A stretch of 64,000 bases of DNA, taken from positions 1 through 64,000 of the forward strand of contig CDROCS010005581.1 in NCBI GenBank assembly GCA_977020255.1, given 5' to 3'. Positions 10,309 to 18,395 of the stretch are shown piece after piece. Position 1 is the first letter of the stretch, and each line of letters starts with the position of its first letter. Below the pieces are notes generated by a model that saw nothing but the letters and a program-made list of their open reading frames with translations, was not told the DNA's origin and did not search any database. Source of the DNA: Obrimoposthia wandeli (lineage: Eukaryota). Made by a program: the position numbers and the translations under genes.

Positions 10309-10694
10309 CCAACCTCTTGTTCCAGAGATTGTAACGAAAAGCGTCCTCGGGTAGTCTGCTCAACCATTAACTGATTAAGCATGCTTTCATTACGGATGGT
10401 AAGTACCTCCTTATTTGATAATCGCAGCAGTAGTACAGCAGGATTATGATGGACATTACCGTTACGGATGAAAGCGCAACTATGCATCGTCGAATGTCAA
10501 AAAAATGCAGTCATAAATATGCATAATCTTTCTATCAATACATTCCGAAGCCATGAAGCTGCCAATCAATTTTTAGCGCATGTACTCACACATACGTTAT
10601 GTCATATTTTCATTTTTATTTTTCACCAGTTGCCTAATCGCAACACCCATACCGAATATATAACACCCAGCTCTTGGGTGTTGAGCGGAGACTC

Positions 10695-13600
10695 ATGATG
10701 AGCCAAACCCCGAAAACCACGTCTGAATCGCAGGAAGATACGCGACTCAATAAACGTCTTAAAGACATGCCAATTGCGATTGTTGGCATGGCGAGTATGT
10801 TTGCGAATTCCCGTTACTTGAATAAGTTCTGGGATCTTATCAGCGAGAAAATTGATGCTATTACAGAAGTGCCTGAAACTCACTGGCGCCCAGAAGATTA
10901 TTACGATGCAAACAAAAGCACACCGGATAAGTCTTACTGTAAGCGTGGTGGCTTTATTCCAGAAGTTGATTTCAACCCAATGGAATTCGGGCTTCCGCCT
11001 AACATTCTTGAACTCACTGACACGTCACAGCTACTGTCACTGATCGTAGCAAAAGAGGTATTGGCTGATGCCAAGCTTCCTGAAACGTACGACCGCGACA
11101 AAATCGGTATTACCCTTGGTGTCGGTGGTGGTCAGAAGATCAGTCAAAGCCTTAACGCTCGTCTTCAATACCCTGTTCTAAAAAAAGTATTTAAAAACAG
11201 CGGCATCACTGATGAAGACAGTGAAATGTTGATTAAGAAATTCCAAGATCAATACATTCACTGGGAAGAAAACTCATTCCCAGGTTCACTGGGTAACGTT
11301 ATTTCCGGCCGTATTGCTAATCGCTTTGACCTAGGTGGCATGAACTGTGTCGTTGATGCTGCATGTGCGGGCTCTCTTGCTGCATTACGTATGGCATTAA
11401 GCGAACTGGTTGAAGGCCGCAGTGAAATGATGATCACAGGTGGTGTGTGTACCGATAACTCACCCACTATGTACATGAGTTTCTCTAAAACACCGGCATT
11501 CACGACCAACGAAACTATTCAGCCATTCGATATTGACTCGAAAGGTATGATGATTGGTGAAGGTATCGGCATGGTTGCGCTTAAACGTCTTGAAGACGCA
11601 GAGCGTGATGGCGACCGTATCTATTCAGTGATTAAAGGGGTTGGCGCCTCTTCAGACGGTAAGTTTAAGAGTATTTATGCGCCTCGCCCTGAAGGTCAGG
11701 CTAAAGCACTTAAACGCGCTTACGACGATGCTGGTTTTGCACCGCACACACTTGGTTTACTTGAAGCCCACGGCACAGGTACAGCAGCGGGTGATGTGGC
11801 AGAATTCAGTGGCTTGAATTCGGTATTCAGTGAAGGTAATGACGAAAAGCAACACATCGCATTAGGTTCAGTGAAATCTCAGATTGGTCACACTAAATCA
11901 ACAGCAGGTACTGCGGGTCTAATCAAAGCGTCTTTAGCACTGCACCATAAAGTACTGCCGCCAACAATCAATGTAACCAGCCCTAACCCTAAACTGAATA
12001 TTGAGGACTCACCGTTCTACCTCAATACACAGACGCGTCCATGGATGCAGCGTGTTGATGGTACGCCTCGTCGTGCTGGTATCAGTTCATTTGGTTTCGG
12101 TGGTACAAACTTCCACATTGTATTGGAAGAATACACACCAGATCATGCACGCGGTGACAAATACCGTCAGCGCCAAGTCGCACAAACATTATTGTTTAGC
12201 GCAGCGTCTCGCGAAGCACTGCTTGCTAGCTTAAAAGAGACGTCAGCAAACCTTACTAACGATAGCGTGAATCTTGAAGCACTGGCTAAAAGCCATGGCT
12301 TACGCAGCATCGAAGTATCACATGCACGTTTAGGTCTCGTTGTTAAAACAAACGAAGAGCTAAGCACTCAGCTTGCTCAAGCAATTTCAAACCTAGAAAG
12401 CCAAACTAAAACGCATTGGCAGCTTCCTAGTGGTACAAGCTACCGCGAATCAGCGCTTGTAAGCGGTAATGATTCAGCAAAAGTTGCAGCATTATTTGCA
12501 GGCCAAGGTTCACAGTACCTCAACATGGGCCGTGAGCTTGCGTGTCATTATCCTGAAATGCGTCAGCAGTTAGCGAAAGCCGATCAAGTATTCGGTCAGA
12601 ATAAGAAAACAGCACTATCACAAGTTCTGTTCCCTATTCCAACGTTCAATAAAGAAAGTACACAAGCACAAGAGGCTTTACTGACTAATACCGCCAATGC
12701 ACAAAGTGCAATCGGTGTTATGTCGATGGGTCAATTTGAACTGCTAACGCAAGCAGGCTTTAAAGCCGACATGGTTGCAGGTCACAGCTTTGGTGAGCTA
12801 AGTGCCCTATGCGCTTCTGGTGTAATCTCTCAAGACGATTACTACCAGCTTGCTTTTGCACGCGGTAACGCAATGGCAGCAACACCAGCAGAAGGTGATA
12901 GCGGCACAATGTACGCTGTTATTCTTGACGCTGATAAGCTGGCAGACGTTGAAAAATGCATTAGTGCATTTGAAGGCGTAAGCATTGCTAATTACAACGC
13001 ACCAACACAACTAGTTATTGCGGGCCCTACCGACAGTGCTCAGCTTGCTGCGAAAGCACTAACCGAGCAAGGCTTCAAAACGATTCCTCTTCCTGTTTCT
13101 GGCGCTTTCCACACGCCATTAGTTGCCCACGCACAAAAGCCTTTTGCAACGGCTATTGATAAAGCAACGTTCAGCACACCAGTATTACCGCTTTATTCTA
13201 ATGCAACTGGTGAACTGCATAAGAACAATGGCAAGGTCATTAAGAAAGCGTTCAAGCAACATATGTTGCAATCTGTTCGTTTCAGCACACAGCTTGAAGC
13301 GATGTATGACGCTGGCGCACGTGTCTTTGTCGAGTTCGGACCAAAGAACATTCTACAGAAGCTCGTTGAAAAGACGTTAAGTGATAAAGCCGATGAGCTT
13401 TGCATGATCAGTATTAACCCGAACCCTAAGGGTGATAGTGATCAGCAATTACGCTTAGCCGCAGTTCAGCTCGCTGTTGTGGGTATCTCGCTAGATAATA
13501 TCGACCCGTATCAAGCAGAGATTGCGCCACCAGCAGCAACATCACCAATGAACATCAAACTAAACGCAGCGAATTACATCAGTCCAGCGACTCGTGCAAA

Positions 13601-16600
13601 AATGGCTAAGTCATTAACAACTGGCGAAGTAAGCACTAAAACTGAAATCGTTGAAAAAATCATTGAAAAAATTGTGGAAAAAGAAGTGATTAAAACGGAA
13701 ATTCGTGAAGTACCCGTTGCAGCAGCGCCAACGCAGGCTGTAACTGTACAAACAACGGCACAGCCAGTGGTTACTACAACAGCGGTAACAGCAGCGCCAG
13801 CTCAAGTTGTTACACAAGCAACGTCACAACTGCCAGTCGGTGATGCATCTTTGCATGCTTTCTTCAGTGCACAACAGCAAGCCGCTGAACTTCATCAGCA
13901 GTTCTTAGCGATTCCTCAGCAATACGGTGATACGTTCACTGCATTGATGACCGAACAAGCTAAAATGGCAACGGCTGGTATTGCGATTCCAGAAAGCCTA
14001 CAACGTTCAATGGAGCTATTCCACCAGCACCAAGCTGAAACGTTAAAAGCGCATGCCCACTACCTTGAATTACAGGCAAACAGCAATAACTCTGCGTTAG
14101 GTATGTTGACTTCACAAGCGCCTGCTCTTCAGGTTCCTGTTTATCAGACGCCAGTTCAGCAAGCACCAGCGGCTCCTGCTGCACCAGTAATTACGCCGGT
14201 AGTTACCGCACCAGTAGTTGCTGCACCAATCGCAGCACCAGTTAAGCCTGTTGTTCACACTCAACAATCAACACCAGTCGCTTCAGCGCCAATCGCGGCA
14301 CCTGTTGTACAGACAGTTAAAGCTACACCTGTTGTTCAAGCAGCTGCAGCTCCACAAGTTGCTGTCCAAACGGCAAATCCAGAACAAGTGATGCTGGAAG
14401 TGGTTGCCGATAAGACGGGTTACCCTACCGAGATGTTAGATCTTGATATGGATATGGAAGCAGACCTAGGTATCGACTCAATTAAGCGTGTTGAAATTCT
14501 AGGTACGGTTCAAGATAAAATGCCAAACCTACCAGAACTAAGCCCTGATGATTTAGCTGAGTGTCGTACACTGGGCGAAATCGTGACTTACATGAACAGT
14601 AAAATGCCAGCAGCAGCTTCTGTTGCAGCAACGGTTGCTTCAGCTCCAGTAGCGTCAGTATCAAACGGCTTAGACGCAACGCAAGTTCAAAACACAATGC
14701 TTGAAGTGGTTGCCGATAAAACCGGTTACCCAACTGAAATGCTTGACCTTGCGATGGACATGGAAGCAGATTTGGGTATCGACTCTATTAAGCGAGTTGA
14801 AATTCTAGGTACGGTTCAAGACCAGCTACCAACGCTACCTGAGTTAAACCCTGAAGATTTAGCTGAGTGTCGTACGCTAGGCGAAATCGTGAGCTACATG
14901 AACAGCAAGCTTCCTGCAGCTTCTGCTGTCGTTGCTTCTGCTCCAGTCGCATCAGTATCAAATGGCTTAGACGCAACGCAAGTTCAAAGCACAATGCTAG
15001 ACGTTGTAGCTGATAAGACTGGCTACCCAACTGAAATGCTAGACCTTGCGATGGACATGGAAGCAGATTTAGGTATCGACTCTATCAAACGTGTTGAAAT
15101 TCTAGGTACTGTGCAAGACCAACTACCGGGTTTACCAGAGCTTAACCCTGAAGATTTAGCTGAGTGTCGTACGTTAGGCGAAATCGTTGATTACATGAAC
15201 AGCAAACTACCTGCTGTCTCTGTACAAGATGTAGCGGTACAAGCACCAATAACTACGGCGTCAGCATCAAACGGTTTAGACGCATCACAAGTTCAAAGCA
15301 CAATGCTAGACGTTGTTGCAGATAAGACTGGCTACCCAACTGAAATGCTAGACCTTGCGATGGACATGGAAGCAGATTTGGGTATCGACTCTATCAAACG
15401 AGTTGAAATTCTAGGTACTGTGCAAGACCAACTACCTGGCTTACCAGAGCTTAACCCTGAAGATTTAGCTGAGTGTCGTACGCTAGGCGAAATCGTAAGC
15501 TACATGAACAGCAAGCTTCCTGCAGCTTCTGCTGTCGTTGCTTCTGCTCCAGTCGCATCAGTATCAAATGGTTTAGACGCAGCACATGTTCAAAACACGA
15601 TGATGAATGTGGTTGCCGATAAAACAGGTTACCCCGCAGAAATGCTAGACCTTGCAATGGACATGGAAGCTGACCTTGGTATCGACTCTATCAAGCGTGT
15701 TGAAATTCTAGGTACTGTGCAAGACCAACTACCGGGTTTGCCTGAGCTTAACCCTGAAGATTTAGCTGAGTGTCGTACACTGGGCGAAATCGTTGTTTAC
15801 ATGCAAAGCAAACTTTCTAATACTTCAGCAGTAGCAGCACCTTCTGCTCCTGTTTTAGAAACGATTGCAGAGACAAGTAATGTAGAGCTTCCTCCTCACA
15901 GCGAGGTGGCGCTAAAAAAGTTACCAGCGGTAGATAAATTAGTAGACTGTTTTTCCAAAGAAGCTTGTATCGTGATTACCGATGATGGTCACAATGCCGG
16001 TGTTCTAGCAGAAAAGTTAAGTGCAAACGGCCTTCAAGTTGCTGTTGTGCGTAGTCCTCTATCTGCCGCGTCACCTTTAAACAGCGAAATCGCGAGCTAC
16101 ACATTAGCAAGCATTGATGACGCTAGTATCAAAACTGTTATTTCAGACATTGAAAGCAAGCAAAAAGCAATTGGTGGATTCATTCACTTACAGCCTCTTG
16201 CAACCGATGCTAAAACAGATAAAGCAACAGCTGTAAAACTGCATGCAACGGCAAAAGAAAGCATTTCTATGGCTTTCCTATTCGCGAAATTGCTTAATAC
16301 TCAGCTAAACGCAGCAACAAATCGCAGCGTCTTCTTTACGGTAAGTCGTATCGACGGTGGTTTCGGTTATTTGGATACAGAACAGCTTATCAATGCTGAA
16401 CTAAACCAAGCGGCATTATCTGGTTTAACGAAAACATTGAGCCACGAATGGTCAACAGTCTTCTGTCGCGCACTGGATGTTGCACCAACGCTTGATGCTC
16501 GTCATCTTGCAGAAGCAGTAACAGCCGAACTGTTCGATATCGATACTCACACTGTTGAAGTAGGTCTTGCTGATGCGAATAACGGTGAATCTAGTCGAGC

Positions 16601-18395
16601 AACACTGATTGCGACTGATGCTGGTACTGCTCTAACAAAAAATGCTTCAGCCAAACTAGACAAGAACGATAACGTGCTTGTGACTGGCGGTGCTAAAGGC
16701 GTGACGTTTGAATGTGCATTAACACTGGCTAAACAGTGTAAATCACACTTCATTCTTGCAGGTCGTAGTCAACATATTACGGCAAACGAACTGCCAGAAT
16801 GGGCACAAGGTAAACAAGCGAACGAGCTAAAACCTGCTGCTATTCGCCATATTCAAACATCTGGTGATAAACCAACCCCGAAGAAAGTCGATGCGTTAAT
16901 CAAGCCTGTATTAAGCAGCCTTGAAATTAACACTGCGCTTTCTGCCTTTGCTAACGTGGGTGCGAGTGCTGAATACCTAAGCCTTGATGTATCAAACAGT
17001 GAGTCTGTTGCTAACACATTGTCTCTGTTCAATAATATTACAGGCCTTATTCACGGTGCAGGCGTACTCGCTGATAAACATATTCAAGATAAAACAATTG
17101 ATGAGTTAAACCTTGTTTATGGCACTAAAGTAGGCGGCCTTGAAGCTGTGCTTAACGCATTAAACAGCGACAAGCTAAAACTGGTTGCGATGTTCTCATC
17201 AGCAGCAGGCTTCTACGGCAACACTGGTCAAAGCGATTACGCGATGTCCAATGAAATCTTGAATAAAGCTGCATTACAGCTATCTGCACGTAACCCTGAA
17301 GCAAAAGTAATGAGCTTCAACTGGGGACCGTGGGACGGTGGCATGGTAAACGCAGCATTGAAGAAAATGTTTACTGACCGTGGTGTATACGTGATTCCTC
17401 TTCAAGCGGGTGCTGAACTGTTTAGCTCTCAGCTGCTAAGTGAAACAGGTATTCAACTGCTTGTGGGTACAAGCATGCAAGGTTCAGACAACAAGGAAGC
17501 CACTGTAAAAAAGCTTGATGCGGAGTCTATGCTAGTAGCAAAGAGTCCGCTGAATTCAAGCATTACTGTAACACGCGATCTTGACCCGAAGGCGATGCCT
17601 TTCATCAATGATCACTGCATTGCCGGTAACCCAGTGTTACCGACAGTGTGTGCCATTCAATGGATGCGTGAAGCAGCAGAGCAGCTGTTAGGGGCGAACG
17701 TTACTGTTCGCGACTACAAACTGCTTAAAGGCGTGATCTTTGATACGAATGAAGTACAAACGCTCACATTGACACTGACGCCAGACGTAACGGATCAAAT
17801 CAAAGCATTGATCAGCTGCCAAGGTCGTCCTCAGTATCAAGCGATGTTGGTGGTAGAACCCGTATCAGCTGCACAGGCTAAAACCTTTACAGCGGATTCA
17901 AATGAACCCGTAACAACAGCTGAAACCTTATACAGTAATGGCACCCTATTCCATGGCCCACGACTGCAAGGCATCACAACGGTTGAACGTTTTGATGATG
18001 CTGGTTTGCTAGCGCAGTGTCAGCTACCAACAGTGGCTGATACAGACTGCGGCGCATTTGTGCCAACCCAACACCTTGGTGGTTGTCAGCCTTTTGCTGA
18101 AGACTACTTATTACAAGCAATGTTGGTGTGGGCACGCTTGAAGCACGGTGCTGCAAGTCTACCGTCTGCCATTGGTGAATTTGTTTCTTATGAACCAATG
18201 CAAGCGGGTGATAAAGGTTGGTTAGAGCTCAACGTAATTAAAAATACGACGCGTTCACTACAAGCTAACATCTCACTTTACCATCAAGATGGTCGTTTAA
18301 GTGCTGTTATGAAAGGCGCTAAAGTCACGATCAGTAAAAGCCTTAATGAGGCATTTTTGGTGAAGTCTGAGCCAGAGAAGGAGCTTCTGTCATAG
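10695..18395 (+). CDS. pfaA: PUFA synthase subunit A: KS-MAT-ACPx5-KR-DH
   Basis: KS (DAACAGS, EAHGTGT, GHTKSTAG), AT (GHSFG, AFHT), five LGIDS ACPs, KR (TGGAKGVT), DH (DHCIAGNPVLP). Start is ATG 10695 or 10698 after GGAG. Confidence 0.97.
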   Translation: MMSQTPKTTSESQEDTRLNKRLKDMPIAIVGMASMFANSRYLNKFWDLISEKIDAITEVPETHWRPEDYYDANKSTPDKSYCKRGGFIPEVDFNPMEFGLPPNILELTDTSQLLSLIVAKEVLADAKLPETYDRDKIGITLGVGGGQKISQSLNARLQYPVLKKVFKNSGITDEDSEMLIKKFQDQYIHWEENSFPGSLGNVISGRIANRFDLGGMNCVVDAACAGSLAALRMALSELVEGRSEMMITGGVCTDNSPTMYMSFSKTPAFTTNETIQPFDIDSKGMMIGEGIGMVALKRLEDAERDGDRIYSVIKGVGASSDGKFKSIYAPRPEGQAKALKRAYDDAGFAPHTLGLLEAHGTGTAAGDVAEFSGLNSVFSEGNDEKQHIALGSVKSQIGHTKSTAGTAGLIKASLALHHKVLPPTINVTSPNPKLNIEDSPFYLNTQTRPWMQRVDGTPRRAGISSFGFGGTNFHIVLEEYTPDHARGDKYRQRQVAQTLLFSAASREALLASLKETSANLTNDSVNLEALAKSHGLRSIEVSHARLGLVVKTNEELSTQLAQAISNLESQTKTHWQLPSGTSYRESALVSGNDSAKVAALFAGQGSQYLNMGRELACHYPEMRQQLAKADQVFGQNKKTALSQVLFPIPTFNKESTQAQEALLTNTANAQSAIGVMSMGQFELLTQAGFKADMVAGHSFGELSALCASGVISQDDYYQLAFARGNAMAATPAEGDSGTMYAVILDADKLADVEKCISAFEGVSIANYNAPTQLVIAGPTDSAQLAAKALTEQGFKTIPLPVSGAFHTPLVAHAQKPFATAIDKATFSTPVLPLYSNATGELHKNNGKVIKKAFKQHMLQSVRFSTQLEAMYDAGARVFVEFGPKNILQKLVEKTLSDKADELCMISINPNPKGDSDQQLRLAAVQLAVVGISLDNIDPYQAEIAPPAATSPMNIKLNAANYISPATRAKMAKSLTTGEVSTKTEIVEKIIEKIVEKEVIKTEIREVPVAAAPTQAVTVQTTAQPVVTTTAVTAAPAQVVTQATSQLPVGDASLHAFFSAQQQAAELHQQFLAIPQQYGDTFTALMTEQAKMATAGIAIPESLQRSMELFHQHQAETLKAHAHYLELQANSNNSALGMLTSQAPALQVPVYQTPVQQAPAAPAAPVITPVVTAPVVAAPIAAPVKPVVHTQQSTPVASAPIAAPVVQTVKATPVVQAAAAPQVAVQTANPEQVMLEVVADKTGYPTEMLDLDMDMEADLGIDSIKRVEILGTVQDKMPNLPELSPDDLAECRTLGEIVTYMNSKMPAAASVAATVASAPVASVSNGLDATQVQNTMLEVVADKTGYPTEMLDLAMDMEADLGIDSIKRVEILGTVQDQLPTLPELNPEDLAECRTLGEIVSYMNSKLPAASAVVASAPVASVSNGLDATQVQSTMLDVVADKTGYPTEMLDLAMDMEADLGIDSIKRVEILGTVQDQLPGLPELNPEDLAECRTLGEIVDYMNSKLPAVSVQDVAVQAPITTASASNGLDASQVQSTMLDVVADKTGYPTEMLDLAMDMEADLGIDSIKRVEILGTVQDQLPGLPELNPEDLAECRTLGEIVSYMNSKLPAASAVVASAPVASVSNGLDAAHVQNTMMNVVADKTGYPAEMLDLAMDMEADLGIDSIKRVEILGTVQDQLPGLPELNPEDLAECRTLGEIVVYMQSKLSNTSAVAAPSAPVLETIAETSNVELPPHSEVALKKLPAVDKLVDCFSKEACIVITDDGHNAGVLAEKLSANGLQVAVVRSPLSAASPLNSEIASYTLASIDDASIKTVISDIESKQKAIGGFIHLQPLATDAKTDKATAVKLHATAKESISMAFLFAKLLNTQLNAATNRSVFFTVSRIDGGFGYLDTEQLINAELNQAALSGLTKTLSHEWSTVFCRALDVAPTLDARHLAEAVTAELFDIDTHTVEVGLADANNGESSRATLIATDAGTALTKNASAKLDKNDNVLVTGGAKGVTFECALTLAKQCKSHFILAGRSQHITANELPEWAQGKQANELKPAAIRHIQTSGDKPTPKKVDALIKPVLSSLEINTALSAFANVGASAEYLSLDVSNSESVANTLSLFNNITGLIHGAGVLADKHIQDKTIDELNLVYGTKVGGLEAVLNALNSDKLKLVAMFSSAAGFYGNTGQSDYAMSNEILNKAALQLSARNPEAKVMSFNWGPWDGGMVNAALKKMFTDRGVYVIPLQAGAELFSSQLLSETGIQLLVGTSMQGSDNKEATVKKLDAESMLVAKSPLNSSITVTRDLDPKAMPFINDHCIAGNPVLPTVCAIQWMREAAEQLLGANVTVRDYKLLKGVIFDTNEVQTLTLTLTPDVTDQIKALISCQGRPQYQAMLVVEPVSAAQAKTFTADSNEPVTTAETLYSNGTLFHGPRLQGITTVERFDDAGLLAQCQLPTVADTDCGAFVPTQHLGGCQPFAEDYLLQAMLVWARLKHGAASLPSAIGEFVSYEPMQAGDKGWLELNVIKNTTRSLQANISLYHQDGRLSAVMKGAKVTISKSLNEAFLVKSEPEKELLS
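14382..15812 (+). repeat. Five tandem ACP-coding repeats in pfaA
   Basis: Unit spacings 306, 297, 309 and 297 nt, measured at the GAAATCGT of each unit; near-identical DNA. Confidence 0.95.
15903..15937 (+). other. Candidate -1 ribosomal frameshift signal 1 in pfaA (ACP|KR boundary)
   Basis: SD-like GAGGTG (15903-08), in-frame A_AAA_AAG (15914-20), -1 frame stop TAA at 15935-37. Confidence 0.5.
17493..17550 (+). other. Candidate -1 ribosomal frameshift signal 2 in pfaA (KR|DH boundary)
   Basis: SD-like AAGGAAG (17493-99), in-frame A_AAA_AAG (17507-13), -1 stop TGA at 17516-18, hairpin 17520-17550 starting 6 nt after the heptamer. Confidence 0.65.

Follow-up and report, generated by a model that had tools for sequence, protein, structure and literature searches.

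Our analyses suggest that pfaA, the gene for subunit A of a polyketide-type polyunsaturated fatty acid (PUFA) synthase, contains a dnaX-type programmed -1 ribosomal frameshift cassette that would give rise to a shortened isoform, KS-AT-ACP5, in addition to the full-length enzyme; on the comparative evidence set out below, we put the probability of this reading at about 80%. The gene lies on a stretch of 64,000 nucleotides (nt), hereafter the window, which corresponds to positions 1 to 64,000 of the forward strand of contig CDROCS010005581.1 in assembly GCA_977020255.1, deposited under the name of the eukaryote Obrimoposthia wandeli; the bacterial origin of this contig is taken up in the last section. 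The putative cassette comprises a slippery heptamer, an RNA stem downstream of it, and a Shine-Dalgarno (SD)-like element upstream. The class of mechanism is already known, and what would be new is pfaA as its host gene.

Conservation of the slippery heptamer

The heptamer A_AAA_AAG occupies positions 15914 to 15920 of the forward strand, in the zero frame of the pfaA open reading frame (ORF; 10674 to 18395), where it falls on the Leu-Lys-Lys of ORF codons 1747 to 1749. From 15903, the codons of this frame read GAG GTG GCG CTA AAA AAG, so that both the in-frame heptamer and the GAGGTG on its 5' side, from which the original prediction of a frameshift site had started, are read directly in the sequence. 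The mere presence of AAAAAAG is weak evidence because the window holds 35 copies of it (24.8 expected), and pfaA itself contains 11 in-frame heptamers of the X_XXY_YYZ type; the case rests on the comparison of orthologues. Two sets of these were assembled, the first consisting of 50 loci from species genomes and the second of 70 further loci drawn from a 401-genome sample of the order holding Shewanella. In the first set, AAAAAAG is exact and in frame in 47/47 orthologues with the V-x-L-K-K motif, with variable codons on either side, and in the second it is kept in all 31 orthologues of the same eicosapentaenoic acid (EPA)-type clade, one of which has Val for Leu and spells it GTA. Six of six members of a distant PfaA clade with Lys-Lys at this site read ATA or ACA (Ile, Thr), followed by AAA AAG. 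Altogether, the heptamer is identical in all 84 PfaA orthologues with Lys-Lys here (78 from the EPA-type clade and six distant ones), which come from Photobacterium, Vibrio, Aliivibrio, Shewanella, Parashewanella, and the one distant clade, and xxA AAA AAG persists while the amino acid of the first codon changes among Leu (CTA or TTA), Val (GTA), Ile (ATA), and Thr (ACA). Synonymous constraint at CTA-AAA-AAG, for which a comparison of orthologues had been proposed at the outset, is thus found, with 0/84 sequences departing to AAG-AAA or CTG.

The strength of this constraint was estimated from codon alignments that begin at ACP5 and leave out the repetitive ACP region. The tree built from the alignment of 78 sequences has a length of 12.8 substitutions per site, and the Fitch minimum number of changes was counted on it for each conserved column. 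Of the conserved Lys columns, 23 in all, just four (15915, 15918, 17508, and 17511) show 0 changes, the next lowest count being 3 and the median 10, and these four are the Lys codons of two heptamers, the one at 15914 (site 1) and a second one at 17507 (site 2). The Leu column at 15912 changed once, from CTA to TTA with the A retained, compared with a next lowest count of 12 and a median of 22 among the 62 Leu columns; the GCG codon at 15927 likewise shows 1 change versus a median of 19.5. On the same tree, the codons flanking the heptamer underwent 7-19 changes, whereas those of the heptamer itself underwent 0, 0, and 1. A scan of synonymous differences between tree neighbors along the last 924 codons revealed two troughs only, at 15915-15924 (32 differences observed versus 120 expected, z -10.9) and at 17508-17545, the latter being the deepest of the scan (z -13.5).

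Other conserved x-Lys-Lys sites within pfaA provide the controls. ALKKMF at 17358, PKK at 16878, and VLKKVF at 11180 are encoded by many codon combinations, never by AAAAAAG; at VLKKVF, 15 orthologues use CTC, TTG, CTT, CTA, or CTG for Leu and both codons for Lys. In the window, this last site, which belongs to the KS domain, reads as an in-frame A_AAA_AAA at 11180-11186; it is variable and served as a negative control. Across the last 2.8 kb of pfaA in 70 genomes, in-frame A_AAA_AAG is nearly confined to the two sites, and codon usage alone predicts xxA AAA AAG at ~9% of Leu-Lys-Lys sites. Judged by these sequence comparisons, the conservation of the heptamer is far beyond chance.

Flanking RNA signals and the second site

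The heptamer is followed by a spacer of 6 nt (15921 to 15926, forward strand) and then by the 5' arm of a stem, GCGGTAGATA (15927 to 15936, forward strand), which pairs with the 3' arm TATCTGCCGC (16060 to 16069, forward strand) to form 10 bp with one G-U and closes a branched loop of 123 nt. The fold has a minimum free energy of -42.2 kcal/mol (z -2.15), and the pairing probability of 15927-15933, computed sequence by sequence for the 78 sequences, is 0.97-0.99. The sequences of the arms differ by lineage with complementarity kept: GCGGUAGAUA pairs with UAUCUGCCGC in Photobacterium, GCGGCAGA with UCUGCCGC in Vibrio, AUCGGCGGAUA with UAUCUGUCGAU in Aliivibrio, and GCGGCGAUUAA with UUAAUCGUCGC in Parashewanella, most Shewanella pair GCGGCGG with a CCGUCGC located elsewhere along the protein, and in other Shewanella the hairpin is compact, its loop measuring 3-17 nt. 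Whatever its sequence, the 5' arm begins at +6, or sometimes at +5, in nearly all lineages, while the 3' arm has moved, so that the loop between the arms ranges from 3 to 125 nt, which argues that selection acts on the pairing itself. RNAalifold recovered the closing stem in 32 Vibrionaceae and returned no consensus structure across all 78 sequences because the position of the 3' arm differs between lineages. In Vibrionaceae, the codons under the 3' arm are constrained, TCT encoding 40 of the 41 serines and GCC 35 of the 40 alanines, and the third base at 16070, just beyond the stem, is free to vary. The best duplex of the 5' arm with the next 190 nt ranks within the top 0.04-5% of gene positions in 14 of 20 lineage representatives, and the distant Ile/Thr clade carries an unrelated local hairpin of 9 bp, likewise at +6, with a compensatory change between its members.

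The conserved stem is stronger than the pairing first proposed for this site, CGGTAG at 15928-33 with TTACCG at 15976-81, which is not the conserved one: the codon at 15978 varies among ACC, ACA, and ACT, and the pairing is absent from every consensus fold. As a separate observation, RNAalifold places more helices with some two-sided changes within the loop (15937-16059), among them alignment columns 58/84 (AU 14, GC 12, GU 5) and further pairs at columns 111/138 and 114/135. These helices suggest that the loop is branched, although codon-level confounding may account for part of the two-sided changes.

On the 5' side of the heptamer, the SD-like GAGGTG (15903 to 15908, forward strand) is complementary to the 3' end of 16S rRNA. 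The predicted pairing of the 20 nt preceding the heptamer with the anti-SD sequence has a median of -7.2 kcal/mol, within the top 1.7% of gene windows, and ranks under 10% in 76 of the 78 orthologues. The element is spelt GAGGT, GGGGT, GGGAGT, or AGGAAGT and is maintained even across amino acid changes; GAG is used in 44 of the 45 Glu codons at the element, whereas GAA is preferred nearby. The distance from its 3' end to the heptamer is 5-6 nt in Vibrionaceae and ~9 nt in the AGGAAGT form of Shewanella.

At site 2, the A_AAA_AAG (17507 to 17513, forward strand; codons GTA AAA AAG) lies between KR and DH and is followed by a local hairpin at 17520 to 17550 (-19.3 kcal/mol, z -2.9). The site is conserved in 77/77 sequences and is also found in most of the distant PfaA lineages without site 1, and in every variant seen a -1 stop comes 1-3 codons on. 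Conversely, the six distant genomes with site 1 are without site 2, and genome L080 has site 1 only. Three further distant PfaA genes (L111, L093, and L096) carry an in-frame A_AAA_AAG in the ACP-KR linker, 60-87 nt upstream of the column of site 1, with a -1 stop one codon on, and in L111 the relocated heptamer is immediately preceded by GAGGAGG; by their sequence, these relocated heptamers may represent an independent origin of the same device. Taking the distribution of site 1, site 2, and the relocated sites together, almost every PfaA examined has at least one heptamer site after the ACP array.

The predicted short product and competing explanations

In the -1 frame, the codons after the heptamer encode VTSGR and end at a TAA stop (15935 to 15937, forward strand) within the 5' arm of the stem, a reading that had been noted before and that the sequence confirms. 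The stop follows after five sense codons in 70/78 orthologues and after one codon in 7. A conserved early stop had been proposed as something to look for; its position is shared by most orthologues, but the stop is no closer than background. Its constant position follows from its lying inside the 5' arm, and its closeness is not evidence for frameshifting. An AlphaFold model of the region from ACP5 to KR, built on a 28-sequence alignment (mean predicted local distance difference test score, pLDDT, 80.6), shows a disordered linker at residues 67-92 of the fragment and, at residues 93-101 (HSEVALKKL), the beta strand with which the KR region opens (pLDDT ~89). The heptamer, which had been assigned to the linker, is thus placed differently by the model, its Leu-Lys-Lys falling where this strand ends, past the disordered ACP5 linker. 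Given this layout, the short product would consist of KS-AT-ACP5, the linker, one strand, and VTSGR. A search of the PDB yielded no close structure of a PfaA KR, only the catalytic KR subdomains of polyketide synthases. Depending on the start codon, the predicted lengths are ~1,746-1,754 amino acids for the short form and ~2,566-2,573 for the full-length protein.

We favor the following mechanism. With tRNA-Lys on AAA in the P site and on AAG in the A site, a share of ribosomes would slip back one base, aided by the stem that starts 6 nt downstream (15927-15936 with 16060-16069) and possibly also by base pairing between 16S rRNA and the GAGGTG on the 5' side. Ribosomes that have shifted would append VTSGR, stop at 15935-37, and release KS-AT-ACP5 without KR and DH, and unshifted ribosomes would go on to make full-length PfaA; slippage at site 2 (17507) would add a KS-AT-ACP5-KR form. 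This supposes that slippage takes place at a useful rate and that the short protein would be stable, in which case the short form could adjust how many loading and carrier domains are present relative to those for reduction and dehydration.

Several observations weigh against this mechanism. The spacing of 5-6 nt between the SD-like element and the heptamer compares with 10 nt in dnaX, and is therefore 4-5 nt shorter than in dnaX and not about 2 nt shorter, as had been estimated; the 1994 work of Larsen et al. is said to have placed the SD of Escherichia coli dnaX at 10 nt and to have found that moving it to 3 nt inhibits -1 shifting. The element is thus a possible stimulator. The loop of ~120 nt in Photobacterium and Vibrio may likewise make for weaker stimulation than a compact hairpin would, and four lineages (L030, L022, L076, and L078) are without a good stem. 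The -1 stop lies no nearer than usual, the background median in these genes being 7 codons (P ~0.4), and the peptide encoded around the site is itself conserved and modeled as a beta strand, so that some of the conservation belongs to the protein. Finally, most distant PfaA lineages are without Lys-Lys at site 1, which indicates that the site is dispensable for some PUFA synthases.

As to expression, RNA contigs from three marine-sediment libraries, representing a strain ~95% identical, span the site and contain no inserted or deleted letter there, nor any substitution between 15879 and 15997; contigs of this kind can show neither frameshifting nor rare slippage variants. There are no tRNA genes in the 64-kb window, and hence none for a tRNA-Lys(CUU). 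Our search of the searchable literature retrieved no report of frameshifting or of truncated products in pfaA or PUFA synthases. According to a preprint on pfa regulation (10.1101/2020.01.28.924217), EPA increases in the cold and under high pressure with no matching change in pfa expression, a discrepancy for which its authors had no clear reason.

A more elaborate form of the frameshift explanation, speculative and in our judgment improbable as a whole, takes the two nested -1 sites, at the ACP5/KR and KR/DH boundaries, as the source of three PfaA isoforms. On this reading, temperature or hydrostatic pressure would alter the proportions of the isoforms, since both sites rely on RNA stems, and this post-transcriptional control could raise EPA in the cold and at high pressure while pfa transcripts stay flat.

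The rivals of a frameshift cassette account less well for the in-frame specificity and for the controls. The one that survives best, to which we nevertheless give only a slim chance, is that of a conserved RNA element with another job, either a translational pause allowing the ACP array to fold before KR or a site of mRNA processing or stability, with frameshifting as an unselected by-product. Such an element would suit the position at a domain boundary and the SD spacing, which is unlike that of dnaX, and ribosomes can be slowed by an SD-like sequence as well as by a downstream stem. Yet a pause or cleavage site has no need of an exact in-frame xxA AAA AAG, which is kept in 84/84 sequences through changes among Leu, Val, Ile, and Thr and avoided at the three other conserved x-Lys-Lys sites, and the 6-nt gap to the stem is the geometry of a frameshift site. 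Less probable by some distance is that the site has no function at the RNA level and reflects protein constraint on VALKKLP together with codon-pair preference or shared ancestry. The conservation of the peptide, with its modeled beta strand, and the ~9% chance per sequence of xxA AAA AAG at Leu-Lys-Lys are what such a view can draw on, but it would have to explain why flanking codons changed so much more often than those of the heptamer, why other x-Lys-Lys sites in pfaA vary freely, and why the two arms of the stem are under constraint and vary in concert; from the sequence counts on the tree and at the control sites, it appears already contradicted. Slippage of RNA polymerase rather than of the ribosome (transcriptional realignment) could begin from the run of six A's and would yield similar products, but it is the least credible of all, given that six A's are short for efficient transcriptional slippage, that three features of the site are those of ribosomal shifting (the conserved G that follows the A's, the SD-like sequence, and the stem placed at +6), and that the contigs from the three RNA libraries are without an indel at the site, although contigs hide rare variants.

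Host gene and relation to known frameshift systems

The ORF at 10674 to 18395 (forward strand, 2573 codons) contains the Pfam domains KS, AT, five ACPs, KR, and DH and matches TIGR02813 (omega_3_PfaA) over its full length with 4752.7 bits, versus a curated cut-off of 1010.1; it is PfaA, subunit A of a polyketide-type PUFA synthase. Downstream of it follow pfaB (TIGR02816 match), pfaC, and pfaD (TIGR02814 match). The TTG at 10674 is only the mechanical start of the ORF; the TIGR02813 match starts at residue 26, and the true start is likely one of the two Met codons at ORF codons 8 and 9. Judged by its amino-acid identity of 94-96% to Photobacterium frigidiphilum, P. profundum, and P. indicum in this part of PfaA, the stretch is Photobacterium DNA close to these species. 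The whole assembly (1.35 Gb, 6912 contigs) contains at least nine dnaX genes. It is a multi-organism assembly of a eukaryote and several bacteria, to whose Photobacterium part this contig belongs.

If the frameshift cassette in pfaA is real, a polyketide-type fatty-acid megasynthase would join dnaX, copA, and csoS2, the few bacterial genes from which a -1 frameshift yields a truncated isoform. The enzymology and engineering of PUFA synthases take PfaA as a single polypeptide, and a KS-AT-ACP5 form would alter the reading of subunit stoichiometry and ACP dosage. Heterologous expression in E. coli would also be read differently because E. coli shifts efficiently on A_AAA_AAG, and a codon-optimized pfaA would drop the site unnoticed. 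From a physiological point of view, the cassette offers a candidate post-transcriptional mechanism for a rise in EPA without a change in pfa transcripts.

Among known systems, the closest parallel is the E. coli dnaX gene with its gamma and tau products, which shares with pfaA the A_AAA_AAG heptamer, a stem beginning ~6 nt beyond it, an SD-like element on its 5' side, and a -1 frame that closes within a few codons, which in pfaA would likewise give a C-terminally truncated isoform of a multidomain protein. On the other hand, the gene is a different one, there is no homology between the elements, the SD lies at 10 nt in dnaX rather than 5-6 nt, and the compact hairpin of dnaX contrasts with the branched loop of ~120 nt in the pfaA of Photobacterium and Vibrio. 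An Rfam cmscan of 15700-17800 (E up to 1) returned only a chance snoRNA match and no DnaX element; the resemblance is one of mechanism, not descent. The dnaX genes of P. profundum, a Vibrio, and a Shewanella (L126, L125, and L124) each contain exactly one A_AAA_AAG in frame, after which the -1 frame closes within 1-9 codons, a sequence arrangement consistent with the known gamma/tau frameshift. Two other bacterial -1 frameshifts, in copA, giving CopA(Z) (Meydan et al. 2017), and in csoS2, giving csoS2A and csoS2B (Chaijarasphong et al. 2016), are reported to occur at a domain boundary and to free a functional N-terminal part. Both differ from pfaA in slippery sequence and in gene, the host here being a polyketide-type megasynthase, and, unlike copA and csoS2, pfaA appears to have two nested sites (15914 and 17507). 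The orfA-orfB frameshift of IS3-family elements such as IS911 and IS150 likewise combines A_AAA_AAG with an SD-like element on the 5' side and, on the 3' side, a complex structure, which in IS911 is branched; the IS3-family shift, however, fuses two ORFs into a longer transposase, whereas that in pfaA would end translation early.

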